From: Macrostomum lignano
Taxonomy: Eukaryota
Length of the DNA: 64,000 bases
Assembly: GCA_002269645.1 (NCBI GenBank)
Contig: NIVC01000221.1
Span: forward strand, 62,001 to 126,000
Reading direction: 5' to 3'
This document shows, one piece after another, positions 8,017-57,126 of the stretch. The position numbers and the translations under genes were made by a program. The first letter of the stretch is position 1. Every line of letters begins with the position of its first letter. The notes beneath the pieces are model-generated. The model was given only the letters and a program-made list of their open reading frames with translations. It ran no database searches and had not been told where the DNA came from.

Positions 8017-8796
8017 ATGGAGCAGCTATCTCGAATTTCGATTTTACTCGGCGCTCTGCTTACCTGTGCGACCTGCAGGTTTGTCAATTACTCCTACGTG
8101 GGTTGCTACGTGGACTACACGGGCAAGGCCAGAGACTTAGACGGACTGACTGGAGTCACCCAGCTGGGTCCGTTTGAGGTTCGGTCAAACGACCCTTTCA
8201 TAAGAGCAAGCATGACTCTCGAGCTGTGCAGCAGCGCCTGCTCTCTCGGCGGATTCTCGTACTTCGGGGTGCAGGTTGGTCGTGAGTGCTTTTGCGGCAA
8301 CTCAATCGGATCGCAGGGCAAAGGCAATGAGAGCGACTGCAATAAAAAGTGCAGTGGAAACTCGCAGCAAATATGCGGAGGTCCAGCTCGCAACTCGGTG
8401 TTCGCTCTGACCTACCCGAGTAAGTGAAGGGCGATTGATTAATCCATGGTCTGAAATAATTTTCAATCAACTATTTTGCGGTATTTTAAAATTTTTTCAA
8501 GACCTAATGAAAGAGACAGCAGAAAAACCGTGGTTGTTTCGCAAATTTCTATTTTAGACCGTTACTACTTGATTCAGAAGGACAACAGCCTCTTCGTCAA
8601 GACCGACAGCTCCAAAACCTCGTCCTGGCCGGCCGTTGACCAGTCTGTCGCGGACTGCCTGCTCCGATGCAGCGCCAGAGCCGCCTGCCAGGCCGCCGTT
8701 TTTTCGAAGCGGCTGCTCGCCTGCCACCTGCTGGCGTTCGCCTACCCGCCAGCCAGCCTGACCGGACCCGACTGGACTCTCTACCAGCGTGGCTGA
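8017..8796 (+). CDS. Secreted WSC-domain + PAN/Apple-like protein, paralog B (2 exons, 213 aa)
   Basis: Exon 1 8017-8419 (hydrophobic signal peptide; WSC motifs YVGCYVD, MTLELCSSAC, YFGVQVGRECFCGN, C..C..CGG = 8 Cys). GT donor at 8420, tttag acceptor, exon 2 8558-8796 (DCLLRCSARAACQAAVFSKRLLACHL). Phase-1 join keeps the frame (642 nt). Confidence 0.88.
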
Positions 8797-11439
8797 GCGC
8801 GAAACTGACTTGAGTCTTGCGACAAGAGGGTGTCGGCATGGAGAAGACGAACAATGAACAATAAAAATTAGATATTTTTAACTTCGGAAAAACTAAAATG
8901 GATATACATACAGTTACTACCTCTGTAAGATTGCTTAAGACCCGTGACAGTTAGAATGATCCAGTCTTGGCTAAAATACGAGTAGTTCATAAATTACTTA
9001 AGCCTGAGCAGACAGTCGAATATTCTTCATTAGTTAATGCTGCTATCCAATGTTTGACAACCGATCTCAATATAAACAAAAGAAGCTAAGCAGAGCCCAA
9101 TAAATTTCGCAAAACACGATCATTTTCTCTGCATCTGGGACGCAGGATAGGGGCTTGAGGAGGTTTTTTGTCATCATTCGAGTATATTAAACCTAAAGAC
9201 ATAATAATTTGTCCTATATATTAAACCTTGATATTTCAACGCTTACCAACAGCAGAAAACGCCCTTGTTTACAAGTTCTTAGTTAATGCGATCAGGGTGA
9301 GTCAGATGGCGCGCCGCAGCGCGGAGAAGTCCACTCGCCTACGATGTTGGCCGCCCGTCGTCGCACAGCACGCAGTTCACTTATCGACTGGTTTGAGGTT
9401 GGCTCTGTCTAAATGAAGTCTGCAAGGTGAACAGCAGGACGTCCTGTACAGGCTGATGGCAGTAGCTCTGGGTTCACTTATCAACTGTGACATTTTCTCA
9501 GCCAGCTGGAGTGAGTCATCGACGGCGCAAAAAGTCTCTTGGATAGACCGGTGATCCAGTCGCGCGTTGGTGATTTGGTCAACTCAACTCAACTTCGGAA
9601 CAAACCCAAGCCTTGAACACCGGAAGCACATCCGTTTCTCTTACACGATAAACTTTTGACGCATGAAGATTCAGCGACTTAATCTTGGGGCTTCGAGTAC
9701 TGGATTGTTTGAGTTTCCAGGCCTGACGCACTACTGGTGCATCCAGGGGGCTAGGGCTAGGGGGCTGCGCCCCCTCAGTCCCAATTCGCTGTGAAAGTAT
9801 TGGCACACCCTTGCAACCCTGGTGCTGGCTGGAAAATGCAATGGTGCAGTTCCTCCGTATTTTAGAAAAAAAAGCCGTATTTTAAATTTAGCCAGTCTTA
9901 AAATCATGGTAAGGCCGGCCATAATGGGTTTTGTAGCAGCGCGAGTCGCTGCACCAGTTTTCCAATCTAACGTGTTTTATTAGTAGCTCGTAAGACACGC
10001 ATGAGGAATCCGACTACATAGCCAGCCGGCACAATGTCAGCCTAATGGACTGTATATTCTGGCTTTGGCAAAATTCTTAAATTCCAAAATACTCGTAAAT
10101 CCTAGCTTTTTTCGCATCCCTACTTTGCAAACAAATCAAAGAAACTCCTAGACTTCGTGTCGCTTGTTTGTCCATCAATTTATACGTACGAGCTTAGCTA
10201 GCTCAAGAAAAAAATTTCTGCGGAAGCCAGAAATCACGCTACATGTATTTTATTTTGTTTTATTTTACTCATGTCGTATTGCGTCAATAAGCTGAATTTG
10301 TCACTGCAATGGTGGATTGTATGGTTGGGTAGCGGAGATACCGGTAGACAATTGAATAAATAGATAGTCTATATCGAAACTACCCAGCATAAAACTTCAG
10401 TGTACGGCCGACAGCCGGTGCAGTCACCCTACAGGCGAGGACAGACATTCACGTGGCGTTTTGTTCATTTCCTGTTGGCTGACGGCGATGCATTTCACAA
10501 TTTATCGTAAAGCAAACAAAGAGAACAGAGGAGTAAAGTTGTTGCAGTATCCTATGTTTGGTTAACCATATCAGGAAGTTAGAATCCATTTATTTCTACG
10601 CTCGTAGAAGGAAGCAAATGGATTTTAATAGCCCAGAATTTTAAGCCCGTTAAACAAACAATTGGCTTGGAATGGCACCAAATTTTTTTCCTGGAATCTA
10701 ATAGATTAGGAAATAAATTTACAAGGTGTTTTCCATTTAGAAAGTATTTTGAGCACAGAAAACCTAGAAAATTTTACTCGTATTTAAATTAACACACATT
10801 ATGTTTATGAATCTATTTCATTAAGGAAGGGGAAAGTCATTTAAATTATTCATAAAATTCCAAAATCAAACACATGAGACCTACGATATTACGAATATTT
10901 TATCGACTGAAAATTCTATCGGCATACGGCAAATTTTAGAATCTTAGATATCTTAGTTTGAGCTCGTTTGAGCAATGATGAGTCCCTCAGCTTAGCTTTG
11001 TTAGATCAAGAAACTATCACAAACTGATTCCTGGAAGCCTAACTAAGTGAAATAGCAGAACGGATCGAAGGTTCCGATCTTTCGTTTCAGAGTTGACATT
11101 AATTGACTTGTAGCTGTCAAAAGTTTCTAGAATTCTGAGGCGCTAAGTTAGTATAGATGTTCCTTCGTTGTGATGCTATATTTTTTATTTGGTTATAGAG
11201 CCGGATGTAGTATTTATAGTTGGTTATAGACTTTACTAATAGTCAGTAGTAAAGAACGAGAGCACTTCCAATTTCAGTTTCGACTATTGTCTATTCACTG
11301 ACTGAATAGGTCGCTAACTGTGGCTTTAATGTTATAGGTTCTCCTCCTTAAGAGTAAACAGTATTGCAATAATTTTGGAATATTAGTAAATAGTAATAAC
11401 TACCTCTTCTGAGCTGCTTCTGAGGGATGAGAGAGCCTT

Positions 11440-11812
11440 CATTTTGACTCTGACTGGGGAGTAGACTTTTTGAGAAGAGCGGCCCAAAGGCGTGGCTTCT
11501 AACATCTCCACCTCTCTGTGGCCACTCGGTGTATTTTGTTGCTATTGTTGTAAAAATTGCTTGTACCTTCGCTGATAGTCAGATGTGCAACCGACAGCTC
11601 AGCCGCAGCTATTGCTCGGCGCAGCTGAAGGCTGCTTACGGCTGCACCTCATACCCCAGCTAATGCTGGCACCCGTTTTACAGTTGGGTGAACTGCAGAA
11701 ATGCAGAATTAAGTGTCTTCTTGCTCAAGGACACAAATTGTCCCGAGTGAGTCGAGAGTCGACTCACTTTTCAGTCGTGAGTCCGACGCTCTAACCACTA
11801 GGCTACAGCCTG
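11440..11812 (-). mobile_element. tRNA-derived SINE
   Basis: Minus strand begins ccaggctgtagcctagtggttagagcgtcggactc (A-box, tRNA-like), followed by gtgtccttgagcaagaagacacttaa...cacccaactgtaaacgggtgcc, resembling conserved SINE central domains. 3' boundary approximate. Confidence 0.65.
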
Positions 11813-14303
11813 GTAGTGACGCATTATAGAAGAAAGTTCCAGGTAACCGAGCTAACAGCATAACCAGTATTTGTGGCCTAGGGCAATTACTCCCTCAGGG
11901 AGTGAGCGAAAGCCGTGCCGTAGCCACTCTTAAATACGTCAGCCTGTGCGCTCAGTTGCCTCGCTGAAGTCATGAGCCCTCGCACCCGTGCCTTGCCTAT
12001 CCTTGCACTTGACAAACTGTACCCTGTTACAGTTAAACTTTGAGGGATTAAATGATAGGAGCTACAAAAACTGGCGTTCCAACAAAGCAGATATCCAACA
12101 CCTTCATCACACTCAAGCACCACTTCCGGTCGCTCTGTCTGGTACACCATAAGTATAGGATAGAGTATAGGGTACTACTTGCATACGTTAATTGGTGAAT
12201 GCTTACATATAGTTAGCGCATAGTCCCTGAGAACTGTTCGAAAGTAAATGACGAGCGTTGAATTCTCATACATTAATATAATGATTGACTGATTATTTTA
12301 TACTGCATGAGAACATGAGAACCATTATTTACTTGATTTCGAGGTCACAGAATCACATCATCAGAAATTATGGTACTATGTTTTGATAAAATGTTTAAAT
12401 TTGTGCTGGGATCGGTGATGTTACTACGAGTAGTGACAAACTTTCTGCTGCTAAAGTCGAAACATTAATTACTCATGGGCGACTATAGTAACATATATGC
12501 TATCTACCGGTATCCACCAGAGGCATAGACGGGGAGCAAGGAGGTTGCAGTCTCCAATAAGCTGAAAAGAAGCTTGGCATCCTTTTTTCGGATATTTTGG
12601 TACAGCACCACTGTTCTCAATTTTAGCATATACACAACAAATATTTGGCTTTCGATCTACCGCTGCTGATGCGTCTCTCGGTGTCGGCGCCCTTTGTTTT
12701 CAGCGCTCTTTGGCACCCCTGTTACGGGCGTCCCTGTTGTAGACGCCTCTAATACTGACACCCTAGCTCTGGCGCCCATGTTGTTGGCGCCTCTATTTAT
12801 GGCGCTGGCGCGAGTTCAGATTCTGAGTGACAAAAAGTAAAAAAAATAAAAAACGACGGGTTCAGAACTAAGAATCTACGAGCGTTACATTGCAGCCCTC
12901 ACTCTTTTCTGGCAAAATGCAACAAAGAACTGCGATTCTGAGTAGTATCTCGTTTTGGATCTAGAACCTACAACCAGACCTATGTAGAACCTACAACCAG
13001 ACCTATGTAGAACCTACAACCAGACATATGTAGAACCTACAACCAGACCTATGTAGAACCTACAACCAGACCTATGTAGAACCTACAACCAGACCTATGT
13101 AGAACCTACAACCAGACCTATGTAGAACCTACAACCAGACCTATGTAGAATCTACAACCAGACCTATGCAGAACCTACAACCAGACCTATGTAGAACCTA
13201 CAACCAGACCTATGTAGAACCTACAACAAGACCTATGTAGAACCTACAACCAGACCTATGTAGAACCTACAACCAGACCTATGTAGAACCTACAACCAGA
13301 CCTATGTAGAACCTACAACCAGACCTATGTAGAACCTACAACCAGACCTATGTAGAACCTACAACAAGACCTATGTAGAACCTACAACCAGATCTATGTA
13401 GAACCTACAACCAGACCTATGTAGAACCTACAACCAGATCTATGCAGAACCTACAACCAGACCTATGTAGAACCTACAACCAGACCTATGTAGAACCTAC
13501 AACCAGACCTATGTAGAACCTACAACCAGATCTATGTAGAACCTACAACCAGACCTATGTAGAACCTACAACCAGACCTATGTAGAACCTACAACCAGAC
13601 CTATGTAGAACCTACAACAAGACCTATGTAGAACCTACAACCAGACCTATGTAGAACCTACAACCAGACCTATGTAGAACCTACAACCAGACCTATGTAG
13701 AACCTACAACCAGACCTATGTAGAACCTACAACCAGACCTATGTAGAACCTACAACCAGACCTATGTAGAACCTACAACCAGACCTATGTAGAACCTACA
13801 ACAAGACCTATGTAGAACCTACAACCAGATCTATGTAGAACCTACAACCAGACCTATGTAGAACCTACAACCAGATCTATGCAGAACCTACAACCAGACC
13901 TATGTAGAACCTACAACCAGACCTATGTAGAACCTACAACCAGACCTATGTAGAACCTACAACCAGATCTATGCAGAACCTACATAACCTATGTAGAACC
14001 TACAACCAGACCTATGTAGAACCTAGAACCAGGTCTATGTAGAACCTACAACAAGACCTATGTAGAACCTACAACCAGACCTATGTAGAACCTACAACCA
14101 GACCTATGTAGAACCTACAACCAGATCTATGCAGAACCTACAACCAGACCTATGTAGAACCTACAACCAGATCTATGTAGAACCTACAACCAGACCTATG
14201 TAGAACCTACAACCAGACCTATGTAGAACCTACAACCAGATCTATGCAGAACCTACATAACCTATGTAGAACCTACAACCAGACCTATGTAGAACCTAGA
14301 ACC
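11806..14303 (+). repeat. Direct duplication, copy 1 (2,498 bp), immediately left of the LINE
   Basis: Starts cagcctggtagtgacg, ends agaacctagaacc. Matches 20085-22582 at constant offset 8279 wherever compared, including satellite variant order. Confidence 0.92.
12962..14303 (+). repeat. 23-bp satellite array (tagaacctacaaccagacctatg)n
   Basis: Direct tandem repeats with occasional variants. Confidence 0.97.
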
Positions 14304-14755
14304 CCGGGTCCTGCACGTAATGGCGTGGTGAACTATCTGTGCAGTATGAGACTGGTATGGCCTTTATCCCAGCCAGCGATGCTCACACCTGCCTCCCCTG
14401 GCGGGCTGATAGCTCAAGAGACTCTGTCTCCTGATTTTCACCTTGCAAGGCGCACTTCGAAGGGTACTCGTCCCGTGGGTGTTAAGGCAGGCCCCCTTGG
14501 GCCCTGCCGAGCTGATTCGTTGGCGCCGGGTCCTGGTGTGACCATAAACGCACCCTCTAATGTCCCAGTGTAACTCCGTGCTGATGGACGCTTGGCCAGG
14601 GAGTAGTCTGGTCGCTAACGGTTCCCCTTGCGCTTTTGGGTCCCCCCGCAGGGTGGTATTTTGCTTTTTGGGGGCCTGCCGCTTGGTTTGGGGTTGCGGC
14701 CTTGCGGCTCTTTGCCTGTTTTCTGCAGGAAGTCCCACCTTTTTACTTCCAGCCA

Positions 14756-16276
14756 ATGGCTTCTAACCGAAGTAACAAACCGGCTGTGGATGACACAGTG
14801 CCTCCGGCCTCGGCTGGGGCCGTGGACTCCTCGGCCATACCACCTGCTACCATCGGGGACGCCTCGGCGAGACCCGTGGAGCCAACTCTGAGCGGTGCCT
14901 CCGAGAAGACACCTGCTACTCCAGCTGCTAAGAAACGCAGCACCACCTCTGGAGCTGCCCGCCGTCGACTTAACAAGGCGAGGCGGGCCAAGGAGGGCGG
15001 AAGCCAAACCGGTGCCAGGGGCCAACGGCCCGCGGCAGCGGAAGCTTCCCAGTCTGGGGCGGTGGCGGAAGAGGGCCTCGAGCCCACGGAAGCCCCTGCC
15101 CAGGATAGGGAGGCCGATGCAGCCGGGAGGGTGGACAGCCCACCTGAAGAAAGCTCCACTGACCCCCGGGCCTCCTACGCTGATGCGGCAAAGAGGCAAC
15201 CGGCGGTTGTCATCCTGGGAAAGGACGCGCGCCTGTCTCCCGATCAGCTGAAGCAGGTGAGAAGTGCCGTTGATGGCCTCCTGTGGAAGCAAACTCTGAA
15301 GGGCACGCCTCTGAACATTCATTCGAATGCGACGAGGGACTCGTGCCTTCTCATTTGGCCCAGTGATGCTGACTCGGGTCGGCGGCTCCTTGAGCTGCTG
15401 CCCGAGCAGAGCTGGGACCTCAACCTAGCCTTCTGCAGAGAGGACGAGCGCCCCCGGACCAAGAGGCATCGAATCTGGGTCCCGGCCAGGAGCGTTGTTA
15501 CCTCTGCTGACGAGCTCCGGAAAGGACTGCTAGCAGTCAACCGGGAGCTTCCCGCCGCGGGCCTAGTGGTGCATGACACCCTTAAGCGCACCGACGGCAC
15601 TGGCTTCACAGCCATCCTGGGGCTGTCGGACGCCTGGATGAGGCGTTATCCACACGGCAGCTTCATCAACGTCGGCCTTTGGAAGCTGCGCATCCGCTCC
15701 TACGAGGCCGACCCTCCCCGTGGCAGTGAGCAGGGCGGGCGGGATGCGGAGGCGGCCGGGGCCGAGGCGCAAGCCTCTGCTCAGACTGCCAAAGCAAACC
15801 GCCCTGCCCGGCAGCACGGCCGCGCGGGCAAAGCTGAGCGCGCTGCTGAGGGCGGAGGCGACCGACGCCCGGCGCGTAGCACCAAGCGGCGCGGCCTGTA
15901 CCAGCGTGCAGCTGAGGCAGTCCGTACCGCCAAAATCTCCCAGCTGAGGCGAGAGGTCGCCGGGACGCCTAGGCGCACCAGTTCGTCCAGGGAGGGTGGG
16001 GACGTCCCAGCTGGGCCCAACCCCTCGGGGCAGGGCCGACTGGAGACGGACCCGCCTGCCCAGGCGGCTGGCTGCTCCAGGGCATTGGGCCAATCTGAGG
16101 CGGAGGACCCCATGGATGGTGGGCAAAGGGCGGCGAACGCTGCCTACTGCCTTCCGGCCAATCGGGGGCCTTTTGCTGAAGAAGAGCCCATGGACACCGG
16201 CGACCCCGACCTGAAGCCGGTGAGCGCCGAGGAGGAGGAGGAACTCCTGGCGGCTGCAAAATCCGATCTGCAATGA
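14756..16276 (+). CDS. LINE ORF1 (gag-like/nucleic-acid-binding protein), about 506 aa
   Basis: First ATG in the 14636-16276 open frame. Basic/low-complexity termini around a folded core. Stop overlaps the ORF2 start (ATGA). No CCHC knuckle seen. Confidence 0.75.
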   Translation: MASNRSNKPAVDDTVPPASAGAVDSSAIPPATIGDASARPVEPTLSGASEKTPATPAAKKRSTTSGAARRRLNKARRAKEGGSQTGARGQRPAAAEASQSGAVAEEGLEPTEAPAQDREADAAGRVDSPPEESSTDPRASYADAAKRQPAVVILGKDARLSPDQLKQVRSAVDGLLWKQTLKGTPLNIHSNATRDSCLLIWPSDADSGRRLLELLPEQSWDLNLAFCREDERPRTKRHRIWVPARSVVTSADELRKGLLAVNRELPAAGLVVHDTLKRTDGTGFTAILGLSDAWMRRYPHGSFINVGLWKLRIRSYEADPPRGSEQGGRDAEAAGAEAQASAQTAKANRPARQHGRAGKAERAAEGGGDRRPARSTKRRGLYQRAAEAVRTAKISQLRREVAGTPRRTSSSREGGDVPAGPNPSGQGRLETDPPAQAAGCSRALGQSEAEDPMDGGQRAANAAYCLPANRGPFAEEEPMDTGDPDLKPVSAEEEEELLAAAKSDLQ

Positions 16277-19976: not shown

Positions 19977-20084
19977 GCGACACCACTTCAACGGAAGTCG
20001 TTGGTCGCCAGGGGCTAGCGGAATGGGCGGTCTCCTCCGCCTCCTCGCTGCATCCGCCGGACGCCCCCTGCAGCTAAGTCAAGT

Positions 20085-26500: not shown

Positions 26501-26507
26501 TATAAAA
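26501..26507 (+). promoter_or_regulatory. Conserved TATA box of the WSC-PAN genes
   Basis: tataaaa 58 nt before the ATG of C. Equivalent motifs at 7960 (B), 29556 (D) and 46001 (I), 54-58 nt before the ATG, each preceded by a CCAAT-like ccattgg/gattgg. Confidence 0.65.
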
Positions 26508-26558: not shown

Positions 26559-27288
26559 ATGCTTCGGGTGCCGAAACTGCCAGTTTTTATCTGCGCCCTC
26601 CTGACCTGCGCTGCATGCAGGGTCGTCCGCTTCTCCTACGTTGGTTGCTACGTGGATTTAAATGGTGGAGTCAGAGACTTGAACGGGCTAAGCGGTGTCA
26701 CAAGGATTGGCGAGTACGAAATCACCTTCAGAAAGTGGATAAACAAGACCGAAATGTCGCACGAGCTCTGCAACAGTGTGTGCTCACTTGGCGGCTTCGC
26801 CTACTTTGGGGTGCAGGTTGGAAAAGCGTGCCTCTGCAGCAACTCCTTCGGATCTCAGGGCAAAGCCAACGAAAGCGACTGCAGCACAAAGTGCAGAGGA
26901 AACTCATCGCAGATCTGCGGAGCTCCAAGGCGAAACTCGGTGTTCGCTCTGACCTACCCGAGTGAGTAGCTTTTGTTCTTGCGACGATTGACTTTCAGGG
27001 TTATGTACAGGTGGTCCTTTCTGAAACACATCTCAACCACAATCTGTTTCAGACAAAAACTTTTACAAGATGATCAAGCACTCGATCCTCACTGTGGAGA
27101 CCAGCAAGACCTCGTCCTGGCCGGCCGCTGCCCCATCCGTCATGGACTGCCTGGCCCGGTGCAGCGCCACAGCCGACTGCCTAGCCGCCGTTTTCTCCAA
27201 GCGGCTGCTCGCCTGCCGCCTGCTGGCGTTCGCCTACCCGCCAGCCAGCCTGACCGGACCCGACTGGACTCTCTACCAGCGCGGCTGA
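26559..27288 (+). CDS. Secreted WSC + PAN/Apple-like protein, paralog C (2 exons, 212 aa)
   Basis: Exon 1 26559-26961, gtgagt donor, exon 2 27053-27288 after tttcag. Phase 1, open frame of 639 nt, same motifs as paralog B. Confidence 0.88.
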
Positions 27289-29609: not shown

Positions 29610-30345
29610 ATGGAGCAGCTATCGCGAATTTCGATTTTACTCGGCGCTCTGGCTACCTGCGCGACCTGCAGGTTTGTCAATTACTCGTACGTGGGTTGCT
29701 ACGTGGACTACACGGGCAAGGCCAGAGACTTGGACGGACTGACTGGAGTCACCCAGCTGGGTCCGTTTGAGATTCGGTCAAACGACCCTTCCATAAGAGC
29801 AAGCATGACTCTCGAGCTGTGCAGCAGCGCCTGCTCTCTGGGCGGATTCTCGTACTTCGGGGTGCAGGTTGGTGTCGAGTGCTTCTGCGGCAACTCAATC
29901 GGATCGCAGGGCAAAGGCAAAGAGAGCGACTGCAACAGACCGTGCATAGGAAACTCATCGCAGATCTGCGGAGCTCCCTACCGAAACTCGGTGTTCGCTC
30001 TTAGCTACCCCTGTGAGTGACGGGAGGTATTAATCCATGGTCAGAAATAATTTCTCAATCAAAAAACAGGATGAAGAAAATGTGGCACTAAACTTCTCTA
30101 TTTCAGACCGTTGCTACCTGGTTCAGAAGGACAACAGCCTCTTCGTCAAGACCGACAGCTCCAAAACCTCGTCCTGGCCGGCCGCTGCCCATTCTGACGC
30201 GGACTGCCTGCTCCATTGCAGCGCCAGAGCCGACTGCCAGGCCGCCGTTTTCTCCAAGCGGCTGCTCGCCTGCCACCTGCTGACGTTCGCCTACCCACCA
30301 GCCAGCCTGACCGGACCCGACTGGACTCTCTACCAGCGTGGCTGA
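29610..30345 (+). CDS. Secreted WSC + PAN/Apple-like protein, paralog D (2 exons, 213 aa)
   Basis: Exon 1 29610-30012, gtgagt donor, exon 2 30107-30345 after tttcag. Closest relative of paralog B. Confidence 0.88.
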
Positions 30346-41120: not shown

Positions 41121-41144
41121 AGCTACTTGCTGTCTGTGGTGCAT

Positions 41145-43035: not shown

Positions 43036-43756
43036 ATGAGAATCTCACTGTTAGAGTCGGCGTTGCTGTGCGCCCTCCTGACCTGTGCAGCTGGCAGGGT
43101 GGCTCATTTCTCTTATGTCGGTTGCTACCAAGACGGCGATAACTTGAACAGAGACCTGACAGGTCTGAAAGGACTGAATAATCTGGGGCCGTACAGCATT
43201 GCTGTTGGCAACCTAGTGCAAGGCGTCGACAACATGTCGCACGAGTTCTGCAGCAACGTCTGCTCTCTGGGCCGCTTCCCCTACTTCGGCGTGCAGGTCG
43301 GCAGGCAGTGCTTCTGCGGCAGCTCCTACGGACTCCACGGACAGCTCAGCGAAAGCAAGTGCAACAAGCAGTGTACGGGAAACCCAGAGCAGATTTGCGG
43401 TGGCTCCTCCATCAACTCCGTGTTCGCTCTGCACTACCCAAGTAAGTTAGCCTTGCTCCGTTCTCATAGATTTTCGAATGAAACATTGCGGAACGCTATT
43501 GTTGGAACCAAAACTTCCAGGCAACAATGCCTACACTGTGCTGAAGAATTCGGACATCTCGGTGACCTCTACCATGGACTCATCCTGGCCGGCCGCTGCC
43601 CAGTCCGATGCGGACTGCCTGCTCCAGTGCAGCGCCAGAGCCAACTGCAGCGGCGCCGTCTTCTCCAAGCAGCTGTTCGCCTGCCGCCTGCTGCCGTTCG
43701 CCTTCCCGCCAGCCAGCCTGACCGGACCCGGATGGGCTGTGTTCATCAAAACCTGA
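43036..43756 (+). CDS. Secreted WSC + PAN/Apple-like protein, divergent paralog H (2 exons, 213 aa)
   Basis: Exon 1 43036-43441, gtaagt donor, 79-nt intron, exon 2 43521-43756 after ttccag. All WSC and PAN cysteines retained; C-terminus PGWAVFIKT differs from the other copies. Confidence 0.85.
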
Positions 43757-46058: not shown

Positions 46059-46791
46059 ATGCTTCGGGTGCCGAAACTGTCAGTTTTTATCTGCGCTCTC
46101 CTGACCTGCGCTGCATGCAGGGCCGTCCGCTTCTCCTACGTTGGTTGCTACGTGGACTTCACTGGCGGAGTTCGAGACATGAACGAGCTAAGCGGTGTCA
46201 CAAGGATTGGCGAATACGAAATCATTAGCAGCAGGTGTGTGAGCAACACCGACATGTCGCACGAGCTCTGCAGCAGTGTGTGCTCACTTGGTGGCTTCGC
46301 CTACTTTGGTGTGCAGAGTGGATTCGCGTGCCTCTGCGGCAGCTCCTTCGGATCTCAGGGCAAAGCCAACGAAAGCGACTGCAGCACACAGTGCAGAGGA
46401 AACTCGTCGCAGATTTGCGGAGCTCCATGGCGAAACTCGGTGTTCGCTCTGACCTACCCGAGTGAGTAGCTTTTGTTCTTAAGACGATTAGTTGAACTTC
46501 AAATCTATCTACAGTTGGCCTTTCTAAAACACATCTCAACCACAATCTGTTTTAGACCAAAACTTCTACAAGATGTTAAAGCATTCGAACTTCACTGTGG
46601 AGACCAGCAAGACCTCGTCCTGGCCGGCCGCTGCCCCATCCGTCATGGACTGCCTCGCCCGGTGCAGTGCCAAAGCCGACTGCCAGGCCGCCGTGTTCTC
46701 CCAGCGGCTGCTCGCCTGCCACCTGCTGGCGTTCGCCTACCCGCCAGCCAGCCTGACCGGACCCGACTGGACTCTCTACCAGCGTGGCTGA
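46059..46791 (+). CDS. Secreted WSC + PAN/Apple-like protein, paralog I (2 exons, 212 aa)
   Basis: Exon 1 46059-46461, gtgagt donor, exon 2 46556-46791 after tttag. Closest relative of paralog C. Confidence 0.88.
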
Positions 46792-49700
46792 ACGAGATGA
46801 TCAGCCTGAATTTCTATGAGCTCTGGAAGTGGGTCGACTGTGGGCATTGAATCACGTCAAGAACAGTTCTAAGATTTTTTATGATTTCGCTGTCTAAATT
46901 TCAAGCCGAAACTGATTGATGCGATGACAATTTTGATGGCAGTGGGCCTTATTGATATTGCTTGTATATCATTTTGATGCCTGGAGTTGTTTTTCCTTTT
47001 CAAGTCATCACTCTAATATACGATGATCTGGAAGAGAATCAAAGCTACATGTACCATTGCTTCTGCAGTCCGATAAAGAAATCTCGTTTTGATAAACTCA
47101 GAGCAGCTGTGCCGACATTTCAGGCATTTTATTGCTGCTCGGGAAGATTCACGATTCGCAAGCTAGAATGAGGCAATATTGGAAGCTGTGTGGCCTTTTA
47201 CATTCCCTGTCACTGCTGTCAGCTTTTCTAGAAAATTCAAATTAATGTTAACAAACCGCTGCTGCGGCGGCGGGAAGCACAAACGAAAGTTGAGTAGTCT
47301 CAGGCAAAGCCTTGACTAGAACTGACTGGGACGATTGGGATGCAGTAAAAAGCTATTGATGCTGGCTCTGCCTCTCACTCAAAACTTAATGAGCCATCAG
47401 TGCAGTGTCTGCCTGACAGTTAACTGTAATGTAGGATTAAAATGCCTGGCGAGGACACCGTAGGATGTGTTTGATGAAACTGAGCAGTGTCGCTTCAGCG
47501 ACACACCAGCTAGATGGGGTAAAAATGTACTATTAGGTATGGATGCCTTCAAATTTCTCTGGATATGTATACCACACAGGTGCGTCTACCCAAGGAATTT
47601 TTCTTTTAATGACTATTTGCTTAGCAGAACTTAAGACACGGAATTCATGATGTTAGGAATAAAAAGGTTTTCATTTTTGAAACGAGTGCAGCGCAGGCAC
47701 ACGCAAGGACTTTGCTGACTTTACGACTCGTAAGAAAGAGACAGAATTATCTAGCAATCAAAAGCGCAGTTATAAGAATAGTCGTGATTCATAAGCGATT
47801 GCTTTAGTAACAACATTAACTAATTGCAGGACGAATTAAACCCGATATTGACGTCCGCAATTAGAAAGTTCGTTTCATGAGCAAACAGCTGTGTGATCCT
47901 AGCTGCTTACTCCATGCAAAATGAATGACGGAAAAAATCACCATTTACCCAACATGAACAATTTGAGACACGTTGAATTGATACGACTTTACGACTTATT
48001 TGTCTGTGTTTCAAACAGCTACCCATAAAACATAGAATTAACCCATAAAACACAACAGAGATCGATGATCTTTCGGAGTTATTTGGTACGTTGGACTGGT
48101 GAGGAAAGTTTTACTTTAAATGTCTATCGCAATATGGCTATAGTTTGGAAATCCTGTTGGAATGTTGTGAACAATGAAAGCATACATTTCTTTGAGTCTC
48201 ATTCAACGCCTCTTTCTTCCGACCTTGAGTAGTCTTTTATTTCCCACCAAGCAATGCAGCTGCTCAGCCTCCATTTTTATCGGCTATCAGACTCTCCCCC
48301 CCCCCTGAAAACACCGTTACTCGCGTACGACGTAGTGTTGGTAGGATCTATCGCTGCCCTGCTGAGGACAGCTGCACCAGAGCGTCCAGTCGAGGGTCAA
48401 GTCTGTCTGGTTGCGTCCTGGCGCATCAGGTTTCGAGACTTTTTGAGCACTCGCGTTCAAGCACAGGAAAGAAAGAACCCGTGCACTTGGTACTGTGCCC
48501 TCCACAGGTATGCTCTACTATACTGCTTAGGCCAAGGATCAGAGATTCAGACCACCGTGCTTGCGATGAGAATTATGAATCAGTCAAAATTGAATATTCA
48601 AAAGGTTTCAAAACTCAAAAGCTGCCACTCCAATCGATGCCATGCAGTCGATATGCTGCAGCAGAAGCCTTTTGCCTAACTCTGCTAAACCCGTAGGGCG
48701 AAAGTAAAGCACTAAAAGACATATCTACTGATATCAGCAGATCTGTACCTAAAGATCACCATAATTTTTTTACACTCTGAAGAGTGACGGGCACTCCTTT
48801 TATTGAACCAGACCGTCTGCCCTCTCACGCTAAAGCAAAGCTCGTTGGAGACACTACAGTGTCTCGAAGGCAGCCGAGAAACTCAGTGGAGAGCATTGCA
48901 AACATGGTTTGGAGTGATGAGCAGCACTAAGGAGTCGTGTTTTGGTGGCTCAAGAGCATTGTAAAATGTGTGAATCAACGGAATAATTTTAGCAAGACAG
49001 CACTTTGAGCAGTCTTAATTAAAAAAATTAAGGTACCGCTTAAGCCTAAGAAAGAGGCTCTAAAAAGCGGACCAATCTAAACTGCTAAAGTGCATTTGAT
49101 GGTCTTCGGGGCACTGTAGTAGACCACGGAGGCTGCCACCACCCATAATGTGCAGGCGCACCGTCATCTAAGCCCTCTAATAAAGAGGGCTTATTGGGAG
49201 TGTTCAAGGCGGCTGCGGAGTGGCCTATTGAGATGGAATAGGCCTGAGATGGAAGACTGGTGAACTCTGCTTGGGCGTTCATCAGGAATCGGCTACATCA
49301 GCCAGGGGAATTTTCAGCAGGAAATCCTTCGTGGCTGTGATATGGGAAGATACCAGCGAGCCAGATACTACTAAGAGTAGTATGAATGAACGCAAACTCT
49401 ATGGTTTCCAGATGCTCAGTGCGAGAAGGGTCCTATAAAGGAAAACCAATTATAACTGAAACCATTCATCAAAAAACGTTTAAAACTAGATATGCAGCGA
49501 CTACCTGTCATTTTTTCAAAGAATCCAACGCTGACCTCGTGATCTTTTTGGGCACGTGGTTTTCGATCACATCGACCCAATATTTGTTGATAGATACAAG
49601 CGTTTTGAACGAGCAGATAATTAATAGCTTAAAATGGTTTTCACTTCATTATGTTGACATAGTGAAATTTCGACTAAAATGCTATGCTACTACTTAAAGT

Positions 49701-50277: not shown

Positions 50278-50949
50278 ATGATATCCATTTACAAATCGAC
50301 GGTTTTCCTCTGGGCCCTCCTGATTTGCGCGGCATGCAGGGTCGTCCGCTTCTCCTATGTTGGCTGCTACGTGGACTTCACTGACAAAGTCAGAGACTTA
50401 AACGAGCTAAGCGGAGTCAAAGATTGGAGAATTCGAAATCGTTAGCAGCAGGTGTGTGAGCAACACCGACATGTCGCACGAGCTCTGTAGCAGTGTGTGC
50501 TCACTTGGTGGCTTCGCTTTGCGTGCCTCTGCGGCTACTCCTTCGGATCTCAGGGCAAAGCCATGGAAAGCGACTGCCGCAAACAGTGCAAAGGAAACTG
50601 CGGAAGGAAACAGATCTGCGAAGCTCCGTACCGAAACTCGGTGTTCGCTCTGACCTACCCGAGTGAGTAGCCTCTGTTTTTGCGACGATTGACTTTCGAT
50701 TTTATCGACAGGAGGACCTTTCTGAAATCATGTACATCTGAAGCACAATCTGTTTCAGACAAAAACTTCTACAAGATGTTAAAGCATTCTAACCTCACTG
50801 TGGTGACCAGCAAGACCTCGTCCTGGCCGGCCGCTGCAGCGCCAGAGCCGACTGCCAGGCCGCCGTTTTCTCCCAGCGGCTGCTCGCCTGCCGCCTACTG
50901 GCGTTCGCCTACCCGCCAGCCAGCCTGGACTCTCTACCAGCGTGGCTGA
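50278..50949 (+). pseudogene. Frameshifted WSC + PAN pseudogene (J), C/I subfamily
   Basis: Both exons and the intron are recognisable, but there is a frameshift at gtcaaagattgg (about 50418) and several internal deletions in exon 1 and exon 2 relative to paralog I. Confidence 0.82.
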
Positions 50950-51174
50950 GTTACAAAGCACTTGACGAAACATTCTGGCATGATCAAACTGAAACTCTAG
51001 AGTTGTGCGGCGTTTCTGAACTTTGCAGTCTAATCGCATAATTCCGCCTGTCAAGCAATAAAACATTTTGTGGAAGTGCCTCAAAGTTTTAAAGAGATAA
51101 CATTTTCATAGGAAGTAACCTTTTCATCATTTTTTTCACCAACAAATGGCAATTAAATCGGCTTTTTAAGCTAT

Positions 51175-52075: not shown

Positions 52076-53765
52076 AGCACGAAAGCTGCTGAAAGCACGT
52101 GAGCTCTGAAATAAACTCGGGCCAGTCGTCAAATACCCCGTGTTTATTGACACACCAACTGGAGAAAACACTCAAAGGGAAGAAGGCTTAGAGATCTATA
52201 AAATGGCGTGTCGACTCGGTCATATTGGCCCTGGACACTTGTATTACGAGGAGTAGGCTGACTGTGGAAGACTCCAAGGCTGATTTTGTCTCGACTTTTT
52301 GAAATTTTATTCAAACAAAGTCAACAATTGGGAAGGTCGTTTACTTTGCGTGTTGAAACATTTTCGCCTCCAAACTAGCAATCCATGCAGGTAGGATTTA
52401 TCATCCTTGATCAAAACTATAGCCAGTCACTTGTATATCGTTTAGAGGATTGTATAGTTAGTGTCAGAGGAATAAAAGTTTAAGCGAAGTTTTGAGAATT
52501 TATTAAACTTTAATATGCAGCAGAGATTGTCAAAATCGGTTGCAGTTAGACTGAAGTATGCCTTATTGCGTGAGAAAGTGCTCCAAGACTCGCCTAAATG
52601 TGTAATACGTTTGTATGTCCCGAACAGCGCCAGGAGCCGCGACACAGGGAGTTGCTGCAGTCGGTCTCGCTGGCCGGCCCCAGCGATCCATAGGAGGAGC
52701 CGCGCATGCACCGCGAGCCGCCCCTGCCACTGGCAGCTGACTTTTCTGAGACTCCTTGCTGGCCTCTCTACGAGTACTAGTAGGCCTTATTTTAGAGTTA
52801 CGACCATGCACAGATGTTTGATTATAACGGGCTACTCATGAAAAGATGAGCTGTCAATTAATACCGTCCTAGTCATCGCATCTCCATGTAATTCAAGCAT
52901 AAAGAAACAGTACAGGAACAATTGTCTGCTTTGCTAAAGTTTCGTGTCCATCTGTAACGCATGTGTGCGAGCAGTGGAAATCTGTTTATGGGTATTTGTC
53001 TATGGTTATGTTTCTATGGTTTTTGTCTAGGGTTATTTGTCTATCGGTGATTTTCAGGTAATTCTAAGCTGTCCCTTAGGCGCCAACCAAAACTGAGTAC
53101 ACAAACAAAACCTAAATTACAAAAGTCAGACAGGAAATGCTCACTCAACATGGTCTACTATCTAAGGCTCAATTCATTTTTATCACTAGAATTTATAGAC
53201 ATTACCTATAGTAGTTTAAAAAGGAAATTGTGTTCTGATTGTGGGGCAGGTTAGAAATCCAGGTCCGGTGTACACCCTCTGAGAACTTGAAACAGTGCCA
53301 TTAATGGTTTCAAAAGCGGTTGCAGTGCAAAATTCACCGAATTACCATATCCGGCAAGTCCATCTAAATTAAACAATCAATCTTGAAATTTTTAATATAA
53401 AGGACTCTATATTATCTACATGTACATTGCACCACACTTTGTCTTCGCGATTCAGCCTTAAAACCTCTTCCTGACGAATTGAAACAAGTCATCTATCTCA
53501 AAATCGAACGGGTGACCTGCACCGCAGGTCATAAAAAAACTTCTAAGTTTTGTCAACCTTCTGATCTCCCCACTTAAATAAGGATTATCTCCTCACCATT
53601 ACTCGCAATGAATTTTCAGTAAGCTTTCAACCTAGCTGATCGGTCCCTGATAGGCTCGTATTTTATCCAATAAAAATGAGACTGACGAGGATCATTGCTT
53701 ATAAATTTGTGTACAACAGAGGATTGACGCGCGTGATGGTCTTTAAACGACAGCCATCAGGCACC

Positions 53766-54652
53766 ATGGCGGGCGTTTCACCAGAGTTAGTTTTTCTCTT
53801 CGCTCTGCTTACCAGCACGGCCTGCAAGCTACTGAATCATTCCTACTTGGGCTGCTACGTGGACAACACGAACGGAAGTAGAGACATGACAGGACTAAGT
53901 GGCCTGAAACAATTAGGCAAATTTCATGTTCAGCCGGCTGCACCGCTAGTTAACAGTGACGAAATGACAATTGAGCTGTGCAGCAGCATCTGCTCACTGG
54001 GGAGGTTCTCGCACTTCGGCGTGCAGTCTGAAACCCAGTGCTTCTGCGGCAACTCATTCGGATCGCAGGGCGCCGCCGCCAAAGACGGCGACTGCAATAA
54101 AAAATGCAGAGGAAACCTGTGGCAGAAGTGCGGCGGCATCAACCGAAACTCTGTGTACTCCTTGAACTACTCGAACTTTAGTAAGCATGACGCAATGGTA
54201 CCGCATTTTCGATGTTGTGAACTGAACTCGTGGGTTTTGCTTGTTTAGTAGGAGTGCAGTTAAGTCTCGACTGACTCTGATACTTTTGAAACAGTCAAAT
54301 AAGATTCTCCAAATGCAATTTACGTGCCAAGAGTGTTTATTAAAGCCGAAGTGTCTTAGTTTAAAGTATCAGTGCATTCAACCACCAGATGATTCATGCT
54401 GTGCCTCTTTCAGAAAACCTTTACACGGTGGTAAAGAACAACAGCCTCTTCATCAAGACCGACGGCTCTAAGACGTCCTGGCGGCCGGCCGCTGCCCAGT
54501 CTGACGCGGACTGCCTGCTCCGGTGCAGCGCCAGAGCCGACTGCCAGGCCGCCGTTTTCTCCCAGCTCCGGCTTGAGTGCCACCTGCTGGCGTTCGCCTA
54601 CCCGCCAGCCAGCCTGACCGGACCCGACTGGACTCTCTACCAGCGCGACTAG
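53766..54652 (+). CDS. Secreted WSC + PAN/Apple-like protein, paralog K (2 exons, 217 aa)
   Basis: ATG at 53766 (ccATGg) begins MAGVSPELVFLFALLTSTAC. Exon 1 ends 54180, gtaagc donor, exon 2 54414-54652 after tttcag. Phase 1. Confidence 0.85.
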
Positions 54653-56367
54653 CGGCATAAAAACAGCATAGCAACGGCATAACAACAGCATAGCAACGGC
54701 ATAACGAAAGTCAGCAGTGACACTGAAAATACTTGAAAACATTTTTAGCAAACAAACCAACTAAACGCAGTCTAAGAAGTAAAATACACAAAGCCATCGT
54801 TAATGCCGAATTCTAAGACAGAGAAGTCTTGGCAAAATCTGCAGCATAAATCTAACGGTTTTAACAGAGCCTGTCTGCTACTGAAATCGCTACTCGATCG
54901 CTACCAGACCGAAACGAATAAGCCAAGAAAAAAAAGAAAGATAGGAAAAGTTGCTAGCAGCAGAAGACACCTCGCAGTGTCTCTCTGACTCTATGTGAGA
55001 GGAAGTGGCAAGAGGAAGTGCTGCTTCCTCGATTGAGCCACAGGCAGCAAGGGAAAAATTGCAAACAATGCCTGCTTCTATAGCCTTTATTAGAAACAGC
55101 TTCAGCTTCCCAGCTTCCTGAGAATAACTTTTCTCTCGCGTGGCTTGATTCACATAGAGACAAGATTTGCAAGCGAAGACACAAGGAGCAAGAATATGGA
55201 GCTACTTCTCTATAGAAACAACTTTTTTGGCTTCCTGAGCGAAAAATTTCCTTGTGCTCGGGTGACGCAAAGAAAGCAAGTAAAAAACACAAAAGAAGCA
55301 CAGAAACAAAGAGACAACTTTCTTCTCGAATGGTCTCAAAGCTACAAGAATAGCTCTAGTCAGAGAAAGAGTTGGGGTTGGATAGCCCGAGAAAGTTTTC
55401 TAGTCGCGGAAGTAGAAATTTACAAATTTTCTCCCCTGAGTCCCCTTCTTGCAGTCGCAATGGCGCCACGATGCTGGCACGGACTCTGCTACGAGTATTG
55501 GTATTGCGAGACAAAGCCTGGGCTGATACTATGGACTCGTACAATGTATATGCATTCGGGTTGTCTTTTATCGAGTGAAGATAATTTTCATACCTGTAAA
55601 ATTATTGCATCATCAGCGGATGGTAATAATTTTGTGGGCCTTTTTATGCATCACCTGCTGCTTTGATTAATCTGCTGACAAATCATTCACCTCGGCAGTT
55701 CAGCCTTGTACTCAACTAGACCCATACTCGACATGCATCTCCCTTTAGCGACTGCTTGTAATTTCGAAATCTTGAAGCTTTGATTTGACAAGGGTGGGAA
55801 ATTTTTTAATGCTTGAGGGAAGCCCTTAAGCTGCTAATATTTCGAGTTTATATACGATTTTCACGGTACAAATAATCTTTCAATATATTAGCCTTCAGTC
55901 GCAAGGAAACAACCCTTAAAAACGATCCTACCGTCCAAAAACGAGTTTGTGACTAATCGACAGCAAACAAAATTTTTCCATCGTTTTTTCAAATACAGCC
56001 ATCATGTAAATTAAGCAGAACAGTCGAGAATTTCTCAGATATCTGCCCTGCCTTTTCCCAGATTTGGTCTATGTGCAAAGCCTGCTATAATGTCATCTGT
56101 GCTTAGTCTATGGCCAAGAGTCCCCGGCCTGATGAATGAAATAAATAAGCAAGCAAGCAAGCCAAACAAAATCTCCGGTTCCAGAGTTGCAAAACTCAGT
56201 TCCTTTTGAAATGTCAGCTGATTGGTGCCTTCTAGATTATCCAATGCCGCTGGGGCTGGCTAAAACTATACTCTGCTAAGTAGCCATAGAAGCCGTTTTA
56301 AAACTGATCCTTGTGGATTTGAGCAGTTTCTGAAAATACAGCCATCAACAATAAACTTGAAAGTAAC

Positions 56368-57126
56368 ATGCCGCAAGTTTTGCAACTGACTATATTTTTC
56401 TGTGCTCTACTGACCTGCGTGATCTGCAGGATGGTTAATTACACCTATGTTGGATGCTATGTAGATTACACCGATCATGCTAGAGACTTGACCGCGCTAA
56501 GTGGAGTCACCCAGCTGGGTCCGTTCAAAGTTAATTCTGCTAACCAATTGATTCACAGCACCAGCATGACTCTCGAGCTGTGCAGCAGCGCGTGCTCTCT
56601 GGGCAGATTCTCGTACTTCGGCGTGCAGGTCGGTGTGCAGTGCTTCTGCGGAAACTTCTACGGATCGCAGGGCAAAGGAAACGAAGGCGACTGCAAGAAA
56701 GAGTGCACAGGCAACCCGCTGCAGACGTGCGGTGGCCCAAGTCGCAACTCGGTGTTTTATCTGAGCTACACAAACTTCAGTAAGCGGCTTTCGATATATT
56801 GGAAAAGTACACAAATCAGTTCTGTGTACTTTAGGCAATAAACTTCATCAAGCGACAAGCGTACATGCAAATTTTAACTTTTTTCAGAAAATCTTTACAC
56901 GGTGGTAAAAAGCAACAGCCTCCTCATCAAGACCGACAGCTCCAGGACCTCATCCTGGCCGACCGCTGCCCAGACTGACGCTGACTGCCTGCTCCGGTGC
57001 AGCGCCACAGCCGACTGTCAGGCCGCTGTTTTCTCCCAGCGGCTGCTCGCCTGCCACCTGCTGGCGTTCGCCTACCCGCCAGCCAGCCTGACCGGACCCG
57101 ACTGGACTCTCTACCAGCGCGACTAG
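56368..57126 (+). CDS. Secreted WSC + PAN/Apple-like protein, paralog L (2 exons, 216 aa)
   Basis: Exon 1 56368-56779, gtaagc donor, exon 2 56888-57126 after tttcag. Phase 1, open frame of 651 nt. Confidence 0.87.

Follow-up and report, generated by a model that had tools for sequence, protein, structure and literature searches.

Organisation of the gene cluster

The window analysed here, a stretch of 64,000 nucleotides from Macrostomum lignano, carries a tandem cluster at positions 8017-57126. Searches with tblastn, using the exon peptides of the first copy and then all seven spliced proteins, identified seven intact two-exon genes on the + strand, each encoding 212-217 amino acids. An initial annotation had proposed seven genes of this size, strand and common architecture, amplified in tandem and interspersed with pseudogenes; all seven were recovered, together with five clear broken copies. 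The intact genes are:

G1, 8017..8796, + strand: exon 1 8017-8419 (leader and WSC), exon 2 8558-8796 (PAN); intron 138 nt; 213 aa
G2, 26559..27288, + strand: exons 26559-26961 and 27053-27288; intron 91 nt; 212 aa
G3, 29610..30345, + strand: exons 29610-30012 and 30107-30345; intron 94 nt; 213 aa
G4, 43036..43756, + strand: exons 43036-43441 and 43521-43756; intron 79 nt; 213 aa
G5, 46059..46791, + strand: exons 46059-46461 and 46556-46791; intron 94 nt; 212 aa
G6, 53766..54652, + strand: exons 53766-54180 and 54414-54652; intron 233 nt; 217 aa
G7, 56368..57126, + strand: exons 56368-56779 and 56888-57126; intron 108 nt; 216 aa

Every intron has GT..AG borders, is in phase 1 and measures 79-233 nt. 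CCAAT/ATTGG boxes lie upstream of all seven genes and TATA-like boxes accompany six of them, at about -54 to -71 relative to the ATG. G2 and G5 form a recent sister pair. G1 and G3 are also sisters, with 90% amino acid identity, and the duplicated unit can be traced from 7817-9169 (G1) to 29427-30688 (G3) with an 80% match. G4 is the most divergent of the seven copies and has the C-terminus GPGWAVFIKT; UniProt entry A0A1I8FZH1 differs from it by one residue.

The window aligns to the published M. lignano scaffold NIVC01000462.1 with ~95% identity. There, the counterparts of G6 and G7 are the gene models Mlig032201.g2 and Mlig023418.g2, respectively. The splice junctions predicted in the initial annotation are identical in these two transcript-based NCBI models and in UniProt models.

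Domain architecture and predicted fold

The mature proteins contain 12 cysteines in an 8 + 4 pattern (13 in G3 and G5). Pfam WSC matched all seven proteins with 52-62 bits against a cut-off of 27.8, whereas PAN_1 passed only narrowly, since the full proteins scored 21.8-22.8 bits against a cut-off of 21.4. PAN_1 was also matched by 13 of 14 diverse family members, with a best E-value of 3.9e-8. A profile of exon 1 retrieved the WSC domains of Kremen1 (1.5e-8) and yeast Wsc1 (1.8e-8), and a profile of exon 2 retrieved PAN/Apple structures only, namely SML-2 (8.4e-7), TgMIC4 (5e-5) and the HGF N domain (2e-3).

AlphaFold2 gave a model with a pLDDT of 80.9 and a pTM of 0.70 from an alignment of 57 sequences; a shallow alignment yielded no usable model. 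In the model, the C-terminal module consists of strands, a helix and further strands, at moderate confidence (pLDDT 61-85 in the PAN half). With this model, Foldseek found Kremen (5.7e-7) and Wsc1 (target TM-score 0.78), followed by the PAN domains of factor XI, HGF, SML-2 and plasminogen; the latter matches could derive in part from the WSC half, which belongs to the same fold class (PMC9024836). In profile alignments with Kremen1 and yeast Wsc1, the window WSC domain has ~15-20 additional residues between the GCY.D motif and the helix, and AlphaFold2 models the extra stretch as a beta-hairpin. The long extra loop noticed initially is therefore real. In summary, the first module, a WSC domain with eight cysteines, carries a family-specific hairpin of this length in loop L1, and the second is a 4-Cys PAN-core domain on its own exon behind the phase-1 intron, with a near-invariant CHLLxFAYPPASL motif at its end.

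All seven proteins start with a hydrophobic leader, and it is purely from this hydrophobic N-terminus that a signal peptide is predicted. No transmembrane segment was detected in the seven proteins (19-residue Kyte-Doolittle mean of at most 1.53 outside the leader), and the C-terminus is not hydrophobic. The order of leader, WSC, phase-1 intron and 4-Cys PAN is as had been claimed.

Distribution of the family

Every match that covers both domains comes from M. lignano, where such proteins form ~55 clusters at 90% identity; matches outside Macrostomum are confined to the WSC domain. This bears out the proposed lineage specificity. The initial annotation did not recognise the family, yet the databases contain dozens of its members as entries that carry only a domain name ('WSC domain-containing protein', 'Apple domain-containing protein') or are labelled hypothetical. 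Judged by these comparisons, the window genes are one cluster of a large family that is so far found only in Macrostomum.

Broken copies and turnover of the cluster

The tblastn searches revealed five clear broken copies and one doubtful trace:

3467-3535, + strand: exon-1 pseudogene fragment of 23 codons that resembles G5/G2; upstream of the 8017-57126 interval
30715-30840, - strand: pseudogene fragment, exon-1 codons 74-116; adjoins a 23-bp satellite
34694-35170, + strand: pseudogene, exon 1 complete with a stop at codon 8; exon 2 absent
38762-39010, + strand: pseudogene, G5-like exon 1 truncated after its first 81 codons, which include one stop
50278-50957, + strand: pseudogene, exons 1 and 2 both present, with stops and frameshifts
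52633-52725, - strand: doubtful sixth trace, WSC-like match of 31 aa (E = 0.003)

Downstream of the exon 1 at 34694-35170, a 41-bp tandem repeat (35272-35651) occupies the place expected for the intron and exon 2. The exon-2 frameshift of the pseudogene at 50278-50957 is identical in the published scaffold. Tandem and segmental duplication enlarge the cluster, and pseudogenisation erodes it.

With five or six broken copies among about thirteen, satellites around the cluster and one retrotransposon inside it, the array could be read as mostly decaying, non-functional DNA in which the intact copies are simply not broken yet. We consider this very improbable, as open frames, all 12 cysteines, splice sites and promoter-like boxes are kept in all seven genes, the dN/dS of the WSC domain is 0.2-0.47, and the counterparts in the ~5% diverged second assembly are intact, two of them with transcript-based models. 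The earlier description of the family as rapidly turning over holds in part: pseudogenes and segmental duplicates occur, but whole-gene dN/dS is 0.33-0.59 and purifying selection acts on the WSC core.

Contrasting evolution of the two exons

Between paralogues, dS amounts to 0.78-1.62 in the WSC exon compared to 0.13-0.25 in the PAN core, a contrast that is significant in 19 of 21 pairs (Fisher p 1e-7 to 3e-3). In the WSC exon, synonymous sites diverge without restraint, the core is under purifying selection, and change is fastest in the hairpin. This insertion has the highest entropy within the mature WSC domain, and its non-synonymous divergence equals or exceeds the synonymous one in the G2-G5 pair and between G7 and its counterpart. 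The ~170-bp PAN core of exon 2, on the other hand, is nearly identical among paralogues, and its GC3 is 0.79-0.85 compared to 0.65-0.74 in the WSC exon. In the published scaffold, the exon 2 of the G5 counterpart carries a G3/G6-like patch, and G6 differs from its counterpart in the same manner. Together with the dS contrast, such paralogue-like patches between assemblies indicate gene conversion, and ectopic conversion is most likely the cause of the near-identity.

An alternative, which we regard as unlikely, is that the PAN cores are kept alike by selection on the nucleotides themselves (through codon bias, an RNA element or an overlapping signal) or by a mutation rate that is low in this region. 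Nucleotide identity between paralogues does end sharply at the stop codon, and in the protein, too, conservation is highest in the PAN core. However, the copies share non-preferred third positions (CCA, GGA, ACT, CGT), and the patches that match other paralogues comprise multiple substitutions. The region also mutates, as PAN divergence reaches 0.12 between the assemblies for the G5 and G6 counterparts. Compared with a second cluster, PAN dS is low for two genes but not for a third, more distant one. With the distant gene L2a it rises 3-5-fold, to 0.65-0.88, although the peptide motif is retained; even there it stays somewhat below the WSC value (1.0-1.5). Constraint on synonymous sites, instead of conversion, could account for part of the low PAN dS.

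Relation to known WSC and PAN proteins

The window WSC domain resembles those of yeast Wsc1 (PDB 7PZ2) and human Kremen1 (5FWS) in its 8-Cys pattern, its CGG motif and a PAN-like fold around which loop L5 wraps. Both of these proteins are membrane sensors or receptors, in which the domain adjoins a Ser/Thr-rich stalk (Wsc1) or is placed between Kringle and CUB (Kremen1). The window proteins, in contrast, are soluble, combine WSC with PAN and contain the L1 insertion, which both others lack. The best sequence matches to exon 2, Sarcocystis SML-2 (2YIL) and Toxoplasma MIC4 (4A5V), consist of tandem PAN-fold modules. SML-2 is a small secreted protein that was crystallised with galactoside (2YIO, 2YIP), and in MIC4 the corresponding region is that of the two N-terminal apple domains. 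In both, the two modules are canonical PAN/Apple without WSC and the lineage is unrelated.

CBEL-type proteins of stramenopiles are small secreted proteins that join a carbohydrate-binding module to PAN/Apple. They follow the same design principle as the window proteins, but with CBM1 in place of WSC, and no homology is implied; PMC3532174 describes the combination of CBM1 and PAN/Apple in oomycetes. Fungal copper-radical oxidases (9N3U, 6RYV/6STX), structures of which with WSC and PAN modules were among the profile and Foldseek matches, carry N-terminal WSC or PAN as accessory binding modules on a large catalytic domain, which the window proteins lack.

Comparison with prostate-limited transcripts

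The initial annotation mentioned a WSC-like prostate or seminal-fluid gene in Macrostomum. Such genes do exist: Mlig-pro46 (RNA815_16008.2) is described as WSCD2-like (PMC6953679), Mlig-pro5 (RNA815_80.4) has two WSC domains (PMC4490696), and about two dozen of 76 prostate-limited M. lignano transcripts have WSC-type BLAST matches, several of them as multi-copy clusters (PMC5977470, including its Table S1). Like the window proteins, these candidates come from M. lignano, contain WSC domains, are small and predicted to be secreted, and occur in multi-copy clusters. Knock-down of Mlig-pro46 lowered second-mate paternity (P2; p = 0.0035 unadjusted, 0.06 adjusted).

The suggested link to the window genes was not supported. 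We mapped 147 published primer pairs, including every prostate-annotated pair of Brand 2020 Table S11, and none of the 18 RNAi pairs (up to 4 mismatches) or the 129 in situ hybridisation pairs (up to 3 mismatches) maps to either the window or the published locus that is orthologous to it. No primer pair was assigned to Mlig032201 or Mlig023418 by the publishing authors, and none of the published IDs of the seven genes is among the supplement entries listed. The prostate-limited candidates are hence different genes. No PAN is reported for RNA815_80.4, and the leaders inferred from several primers (ML/QFSTLAL...) are unlike those of the window proteins. Prostate expression is demonstrated for them.

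Within the family, an expression annotation was found only for orthogroup OG0000005 (paralogues Mlig011376, Mlig012529 and Mlig003596), which is annotated as testis region and germline_FACS, not tail (PMC7336406); it is a sister subfamily distinct from the window genes, and 'testis region' refers to a body region rather than a cell type. That the window proteins belong to the same functional set as the WSC-type prostate transcripts is accordingly quite improbable, despite their small size and apparent secretion. As the published screen covered socially plastic, tail-specific transcripts only, a non-plastic prostate gene could have escaped it.

Proposed function

By analogy with known modules, we infer that the window proteins may act extracellularly as lectin-like adaptors. 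The variable WSC 'head' would bind differing glycan or protein ligands, while the constant PAN 'tail' with its terminal motif would dock to a common partner. Besides binding glycans, WSC domains can make protein contacts, as in Kremen-Dkk (PMC9024836), and the label 'lectin' is therefore not assured. A reproductive setting, in the testis or germline or in transferred ejaculate, is the leading guess, for which the sister subfamily's annotation is the sole basis.

The proteins could instead form a repertoire secreted by gut, epidermis or glands that recognises foreign or dietary glycans, such as those of microbial and fungal walls or diatom beta-1,3-glucan, with a role in feeding, mucus or immunity and not in reproduction. 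The fungal WSC domains of SiWSC3 and ThCrd2 bind beta-glucan (PMC9024836), among PAN proteins the best match is SML-2, a microneme lectin that binds galactose, and a tandemly multiplied scaffold that stays constant but for a variable hairpin is what one would expect of a recognition repertoire. Nevertheless, we give this alternative only a minor chance, as the family's one annotation points to testis region and germline, and dN/dS is mostly below 1 and hence shows no strong diversifying signal.

Taken as a whole, an account in which a Macrostomum-only family of secreted WSC-PAN proteins undergoes exon-2 conversion and serves a lectin-like role appears reasonably probable to us. The mosaic evolution of the two exons is a new finding.

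A cluster of two-exon genes with a common layout

A tblastn search with the exon peptides of the first copy returned paired exon-1-like and exon-2-like matches on the plus strand from 8 kb to 57 kb, together with lone fragments. Reading of the exon boundaries gave seven intact genes (G1-G7) with the same layout. Each opens with an ATG; exon 1 (403-415 nt) ends one base into a codon and encodes the leader and WSC domain, exon 2 (approximately 236-239 nt) encodes the PAN module, and the GT..AG intron between them measures 79-233 nt. The products are 212-217 amino acids long. Broken copies were defined by a second tblastn search with all seven spliced proteins. The initial annotation had described seven intact and five broken copies with a phase-1 intron, and these numbers, the coordinates and the intron phase all proved correct.

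Features of the gene cluster and the retrotransposon within it. Intact genes are from exon-boundary reading, broken copies from tblastn.
8017-8796 (+), intact gene G1
26559-27288 (+), intact gene G2
29610-30345 (+), intact gene G3
43036-43756 (+), intact gene G4
46059-46791 (+), intact gene G5
53766-54652 (+), intact gene G6
56368-57126 (+), intact gene G7
3467-3535, broken copy, fragment
30715-30840 (-), broken copy, fragment
34694-35170, broken copy, entire exon 1 with a stop at codon 8, without exon 2
38762-39010, broken copy, 81 codons with one stop
50278-50957, broken copy, both exons with stops and frameshifts
52633-52725, doubtful trace of a broken copy
14636-16276, retrotransposon ORF1
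16273-17142, retrotransposon endonuclease
17073-19976, retrotransposon reverse transcriptase and RNase H

Promoter-like elements shared upstream of the ATG are a TATA-like box in six of the seven genes (approximately -54 to -71; TATAAA in five) and CCAAT/ATTGG boxes, one or two per gene, in all seven (-78 to -147).

Self-comparison revealed recent duplications of single units (G1/G3 with 80% identity over 1.4 kb, G2/G5 with 90%) as well as a larger block, comprising a gene and about 2 kb of its downstream flank, in three copies (26485-29336, 36545-39003 and 45985-48913; 66-90% identity). The cluster therefore grew segmentally as well as by single genes.

The region also contains an apparently intact non-LTR retrotransposon (14304-20084, +). 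Its flanks (11806-14303 and 20085-22582) are direct repeats of 2498 bp. Their identity is 100%, even across a variable 23-bp satellite, which suggests either an artefact of assembly or very recent duplication. Arrays of this satellite (TAGAACCTACAACCAGACCTATG) are located at 12962-14303, 21241-23787 and 30848-31037, and one of them adjoins the pseudogene fragment on the minus strand. Further repeats between the genes, a CT-rich microsatellite and a number of GC-rich minisatellites (31557-32986, 35272-35651, 39859-40036, 41126-41389 and 57129-57474), yield many long spurious ORFs on both strands.

Domain composition of the encoded proteins

The proteins begin with about 20 hydrophobic residues, after which comes the first conserved cysteine-rich domain. 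Outside this leader the 19-residue Kyte-Doolittle mean stays below 1.6, and the C-terminal end is polar. Judged from these features of the translated sequence, the proteins are likely secreted.

Membership of the first module in the WSC family is firm. All five proteins scanned matched Pfam WSC (PF01822) with 52.4-61.8 bits (curated gathering cut-off 27.8), and the eight-cysteine pattern and CGG motif that define WSC domains (PMC9024836) are present in an alignment of 15 family members, in which C30, C71, C75, C91, C93, C108, C112, C120 and G121 are invariant. With an exon-1 profile, WSC in both Kremen1 and yeast Wsc1 was retrieved with E-values of about 1e-8. Structure prediction and an exhaustive sequence search were based on database orthologues and per-exon translations. 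AlphaFold2 with a 57-sequence alignment produced a model with a pLDDT of 80.9 and a pTM of 0.70 (pLDDT 85-97 in the WSC half), and a shallow alignment of 22 sequences gave a pLDDT of 47 and no usable model. In the Foldseek search the top matches were Kremen1 (5.7e-7) and Wsc1 (target TM-score 0.78, rmsd 2.8 A), and the exon-1 module is predicted to have a PAN-like fold wrapped by loop L5, as in solved WSC structures. The long extra loop that had been noticed in the WSC domain corresponds to about 15-20 additional residues that separate the GCY.D strand from the helix in profile alignments with Kremen1 and Wsc1. This insertion, in loop L1, appears as a beta-hairpin in the AlphaFold2 model.

Exon 2 matched Pfam PAN_1 (PF00024) narrowly in full-length proteins (21.8-22.8 bits) and with 23.8 bits when scanned alone (gathering cut-off 21.4). 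Individually, 13 of 14 diverse family members matched PAN_1, with a best E-value of 3.9e-8. The exon-2 cysteines C168-x3-C172-x5-C178-x11-C190 are invariant across 14 diverse members, and their spacing follows the PAN and not the WSC pattern. When a profile of 14 diverse members was compared with the PDB, exclusively PAN/Apple structures were retrieved (SML-2 at 8.4e-7, TgMIC4 at 5e-5 and the HGF N domain at 2e-3), and the best PAN relatives are galactose-binding microneme lectins. The C-terminal half of the AlphaFold2 model shows strands, a helix and further strands (pLDDT 61-85). Following Kremen1 and Wsc1, Foldseek listed PAN domains of factor XI/prekallikrein, HGF, SML-2 and plasminogen, and many PAN/Apple structures had E-values of about 0.01 and probabilities up to 1.0; the aligned half is unreported for these matches, and the WSC half belongs to the same fold class. 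Since WSC domains themselves adopt the PAN fold and add two disulphides to it (PMC9024836), the structural matches are ambiguous with regard to exon 2, and it is the sequence-profile evidence that is assignable to it. For the same reason, the whole protein represents a tandem pair of PAN-class modules.

Two other readings of exon 2 were considered. A degenerate copy of the WSC exon was rejected based on an HHalign probability of 0.6% and the lack of detectable similarity between the exons. An Apple domain sensu stricto, as in factor XI or prekallikrein, has six cysteines including an extra disulphide that links the N- and C-termini, and was rejected as only four cysteines are conserved. By its sequence, exon 2 is classified as a PAN-core module and not as a six-cysteine Apple domain.

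Published counterparts and distribution of the family

Several genes have close counterparts in public M. lignano data. G4 differs from UniProt A0A1I8FZH1 by one residue, and one fused UniProt model consists of G5 followed by G6. On the published scaffold NIVC01000462.1, Mlig032201.g2 and Mlig023418.g2 (the counterparts of G6 and G7) are adjacent and lie upstream of a thioredoxin-glutathione-reductase-like gene. Their order in the window is identical, and window positions 43.8-62.6 kb are collinear with this locus at about 95% identity. Given this identity, the synteny and the single-residue difference of G4, the window would represent another haplotype, subgenome or assembly of M. lignano, or else a very close relative. 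The splice junctions of the public models are exactly those predicted here, which indirectly supports spliced transcripts of G6 and G7. The models belong to the Mlig_3_7 annotation, which we take to be transcript-derived. This is consistent with the in-frame 5'UTR residues carried by the 'partial' NCBI proteins. For G1 and G3 no counterpart with at least 90% identity was found in public protein collections (best 68-71%), and both may be absent from or unannotated in earlier M. lignano assemblies.

The reductase-like gene in the window (60527-64000, -) contains Pyr_redox_2 and Pyr_redox_dim exons; its published neighbour also has Glutaredoxin. Minisatellites of 20, 33/66 and 35 bp between its coding segments give rise to a spurious 649-aa ORF at 62038-63987.

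Homologues covering both domains were retrieved from M. lignano only. A profile search returned about 55 clusters (90% identity) of two-domain proteins of 190-220 aa, all from M. lignano, and the matches outside Macrostomum covered the WSC part only. The exhaustive HMMER search added further two-domain members at the 50% level; the best 150 of its 9,232 matches were mostly multi-WSC proteins of the fungal type. None of eight long multi-WSC matches scanned contained PAN, the WSC domains occurring alone or with a glycoside hydrolase or DUF1996. Rare WSC and PAN proteins from other organisms are possible below the best 150 of the 9,232 matches. A search of a large database with exon 2 only returned just five short proteins, all from M. 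lignano.

On the same published scaffold, at a distance of 430 kb, lies a second cluster of three genes. The homogenised PAN core of the window genes is present in two of these and absent from the third, which is 3.5 kb away.

Genes of the second cluster (positions within L002, the stretch 674076-695033 of NIVC01000462.1).
6046-6781 (+), family member
10238-10955 (+), family member
17277-18014 (-), family member

Furthermore, three of the more distant paralogues were assigned by Brand et al. 2020 to the orthogroup OG0000005, a sister subfamily (PMC7336406). Its 92 members come from M. lignano, M. spirale and M. hystrix, and M. pusillum contributes none. The family is therefore older than M. 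lignano.

Different evolution of the two exons

Estimated according to Nei-Gojobori, dN/dS is 0.33-0.59 for the whole gene and 0.20-0.47 for the WSC domain. The two exons differ in synonymous divergence: dS in the WSC exon is 0.78-1.62 in all non-sister pairs, whereas dS in the PAN core (codons 161-213) is 0.13-0.25 in every pair, and 19 of the 21 pairs show a significant difference. In the alignment, exon-2 DNA shows long runs of identical third positions, non-preferred codons included, and its similarity stops at the stop codon and weakens towards the intron. With 0.79-0.85, the GC3 of the PAN core exceeds that of the WSC exon (0.65-0.74). The PAN dS between paralogues is similar to the WSC dS of G5 and G7 against their counterparts on the published scaffold (0.14-0.16). 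Within exon 2, G5 carries the patch APSVMDCLARCSAKADC in the window and AAAQSDADCLLHCSATADC in its published counterpart, the latter being a match to other paralogues; G6 and its counterpart show a similar swap. Compared with the second cluster, PAN dS is low for two genes (0.23-0.32) and 0.65-0.88 for the neighbouring, more distant gene. Together, the dS contrast, third-position identity, GC3, patches and second-cluster values point to ectopic gene conversion, apparently confined to the clade in which exon 2 is similar enough to pair. The conversion is probably GC-biased, and some added constraint may act on the PAN-core sequence besides it.

Family-wide, variability within the WSC domain peaks in the hairpin insertion, and conservation is strongest in CHLLxFAY of the PAN module. 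Non-synonymous versus synonymous divergence in the hairpin is 0.23 versus 0.23 for G2-G5 and 0.13 versus 0.07 for G7 and its counterpart, with counts too small for a test in both comparisons.

Possible functions and implications

WSC and PAN domains belong to families of glycan- and protein-binding modules. Fungal WSC domains bind beta-glucan (PMC9024836). The proteins might be pictured as secreted adaptors that would combine a variable WSC head with a constant PAN tail.

A reproductive role in testis, germline or ejaculate is a tentative reading that we consider quite conceivable, with a prostate seminal-fluid role as one part of it. The only annotation found for the family is that of OG0000005, which is testis region and germline_FACS with no tail label (PMC7336406); it concerns the sister subfamily and a body region, and gives no more than a hint of a reproductive role. 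As had been mentioned in the initial annotation, WSC-type prostate transcripts do exist in the M. lignano literature. The suggested link of the window genes to them was not supported by primer mapping. Of 147 published pairs, namely the 18 RNAi pairs of Patlar et al. and 129 in situ pairs that Brand et al. compiled and that include all prostate pairs, none could be placed in the window or at the orthologous published locus. Table S11 of Brand et al., taken in full, lists no primer pair for Mlig032201 or Mlig023418, and these identifiers, Mlig003751 and others were not found in the portions of the paper texts and supplements searched. Taken by itself, the prostate role appears improbable. Recognition in immunity, mucus or feeding seems rather doubtful.

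It may further be speculated, as a fairly unlikely but more specific version, that conversion keeps the PAN module uniform over dozens of paralogues for one docking partner while the WSC hairpin diversifies for different glycans. Such a 'variable head, constant tail' system would provide germline-encoded diversity with which a hermaphrodite exposed to strong sexual conflict could recognise gametes, ejaculate, or self and non-self.

In the literature searched, we found no description of the minimal secreted WSC and PAN pair, the L1 hairpin, the expansion in Macrostomum or the exon-specific homogenisation, and public databases label these proteins by domain or as hypothetical only. WSC and PAN are each well known. 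The minimal architecture was not found elsewhere, and the evolutionary modes differ by domain, one being homogenised and the other diverging freely. M. lignano is a model of sexual selection in hermaphrodites, WSC-type secreted proteins dominate its list of seminal-fluid candidates, and the cluster represents a second, uncharacterised branch of the WSC expansion. With exon 2 homogenised, a single dsRNA should knock down the entire clade, and exon-1 probes should separate the paralogues. If the proteins are not glycan readers, the family would be an ordinary lineage-specific expansion; if they do read glycans in reproduction or immunity, it would offer a compact system for studying how recognition repertoires arise.
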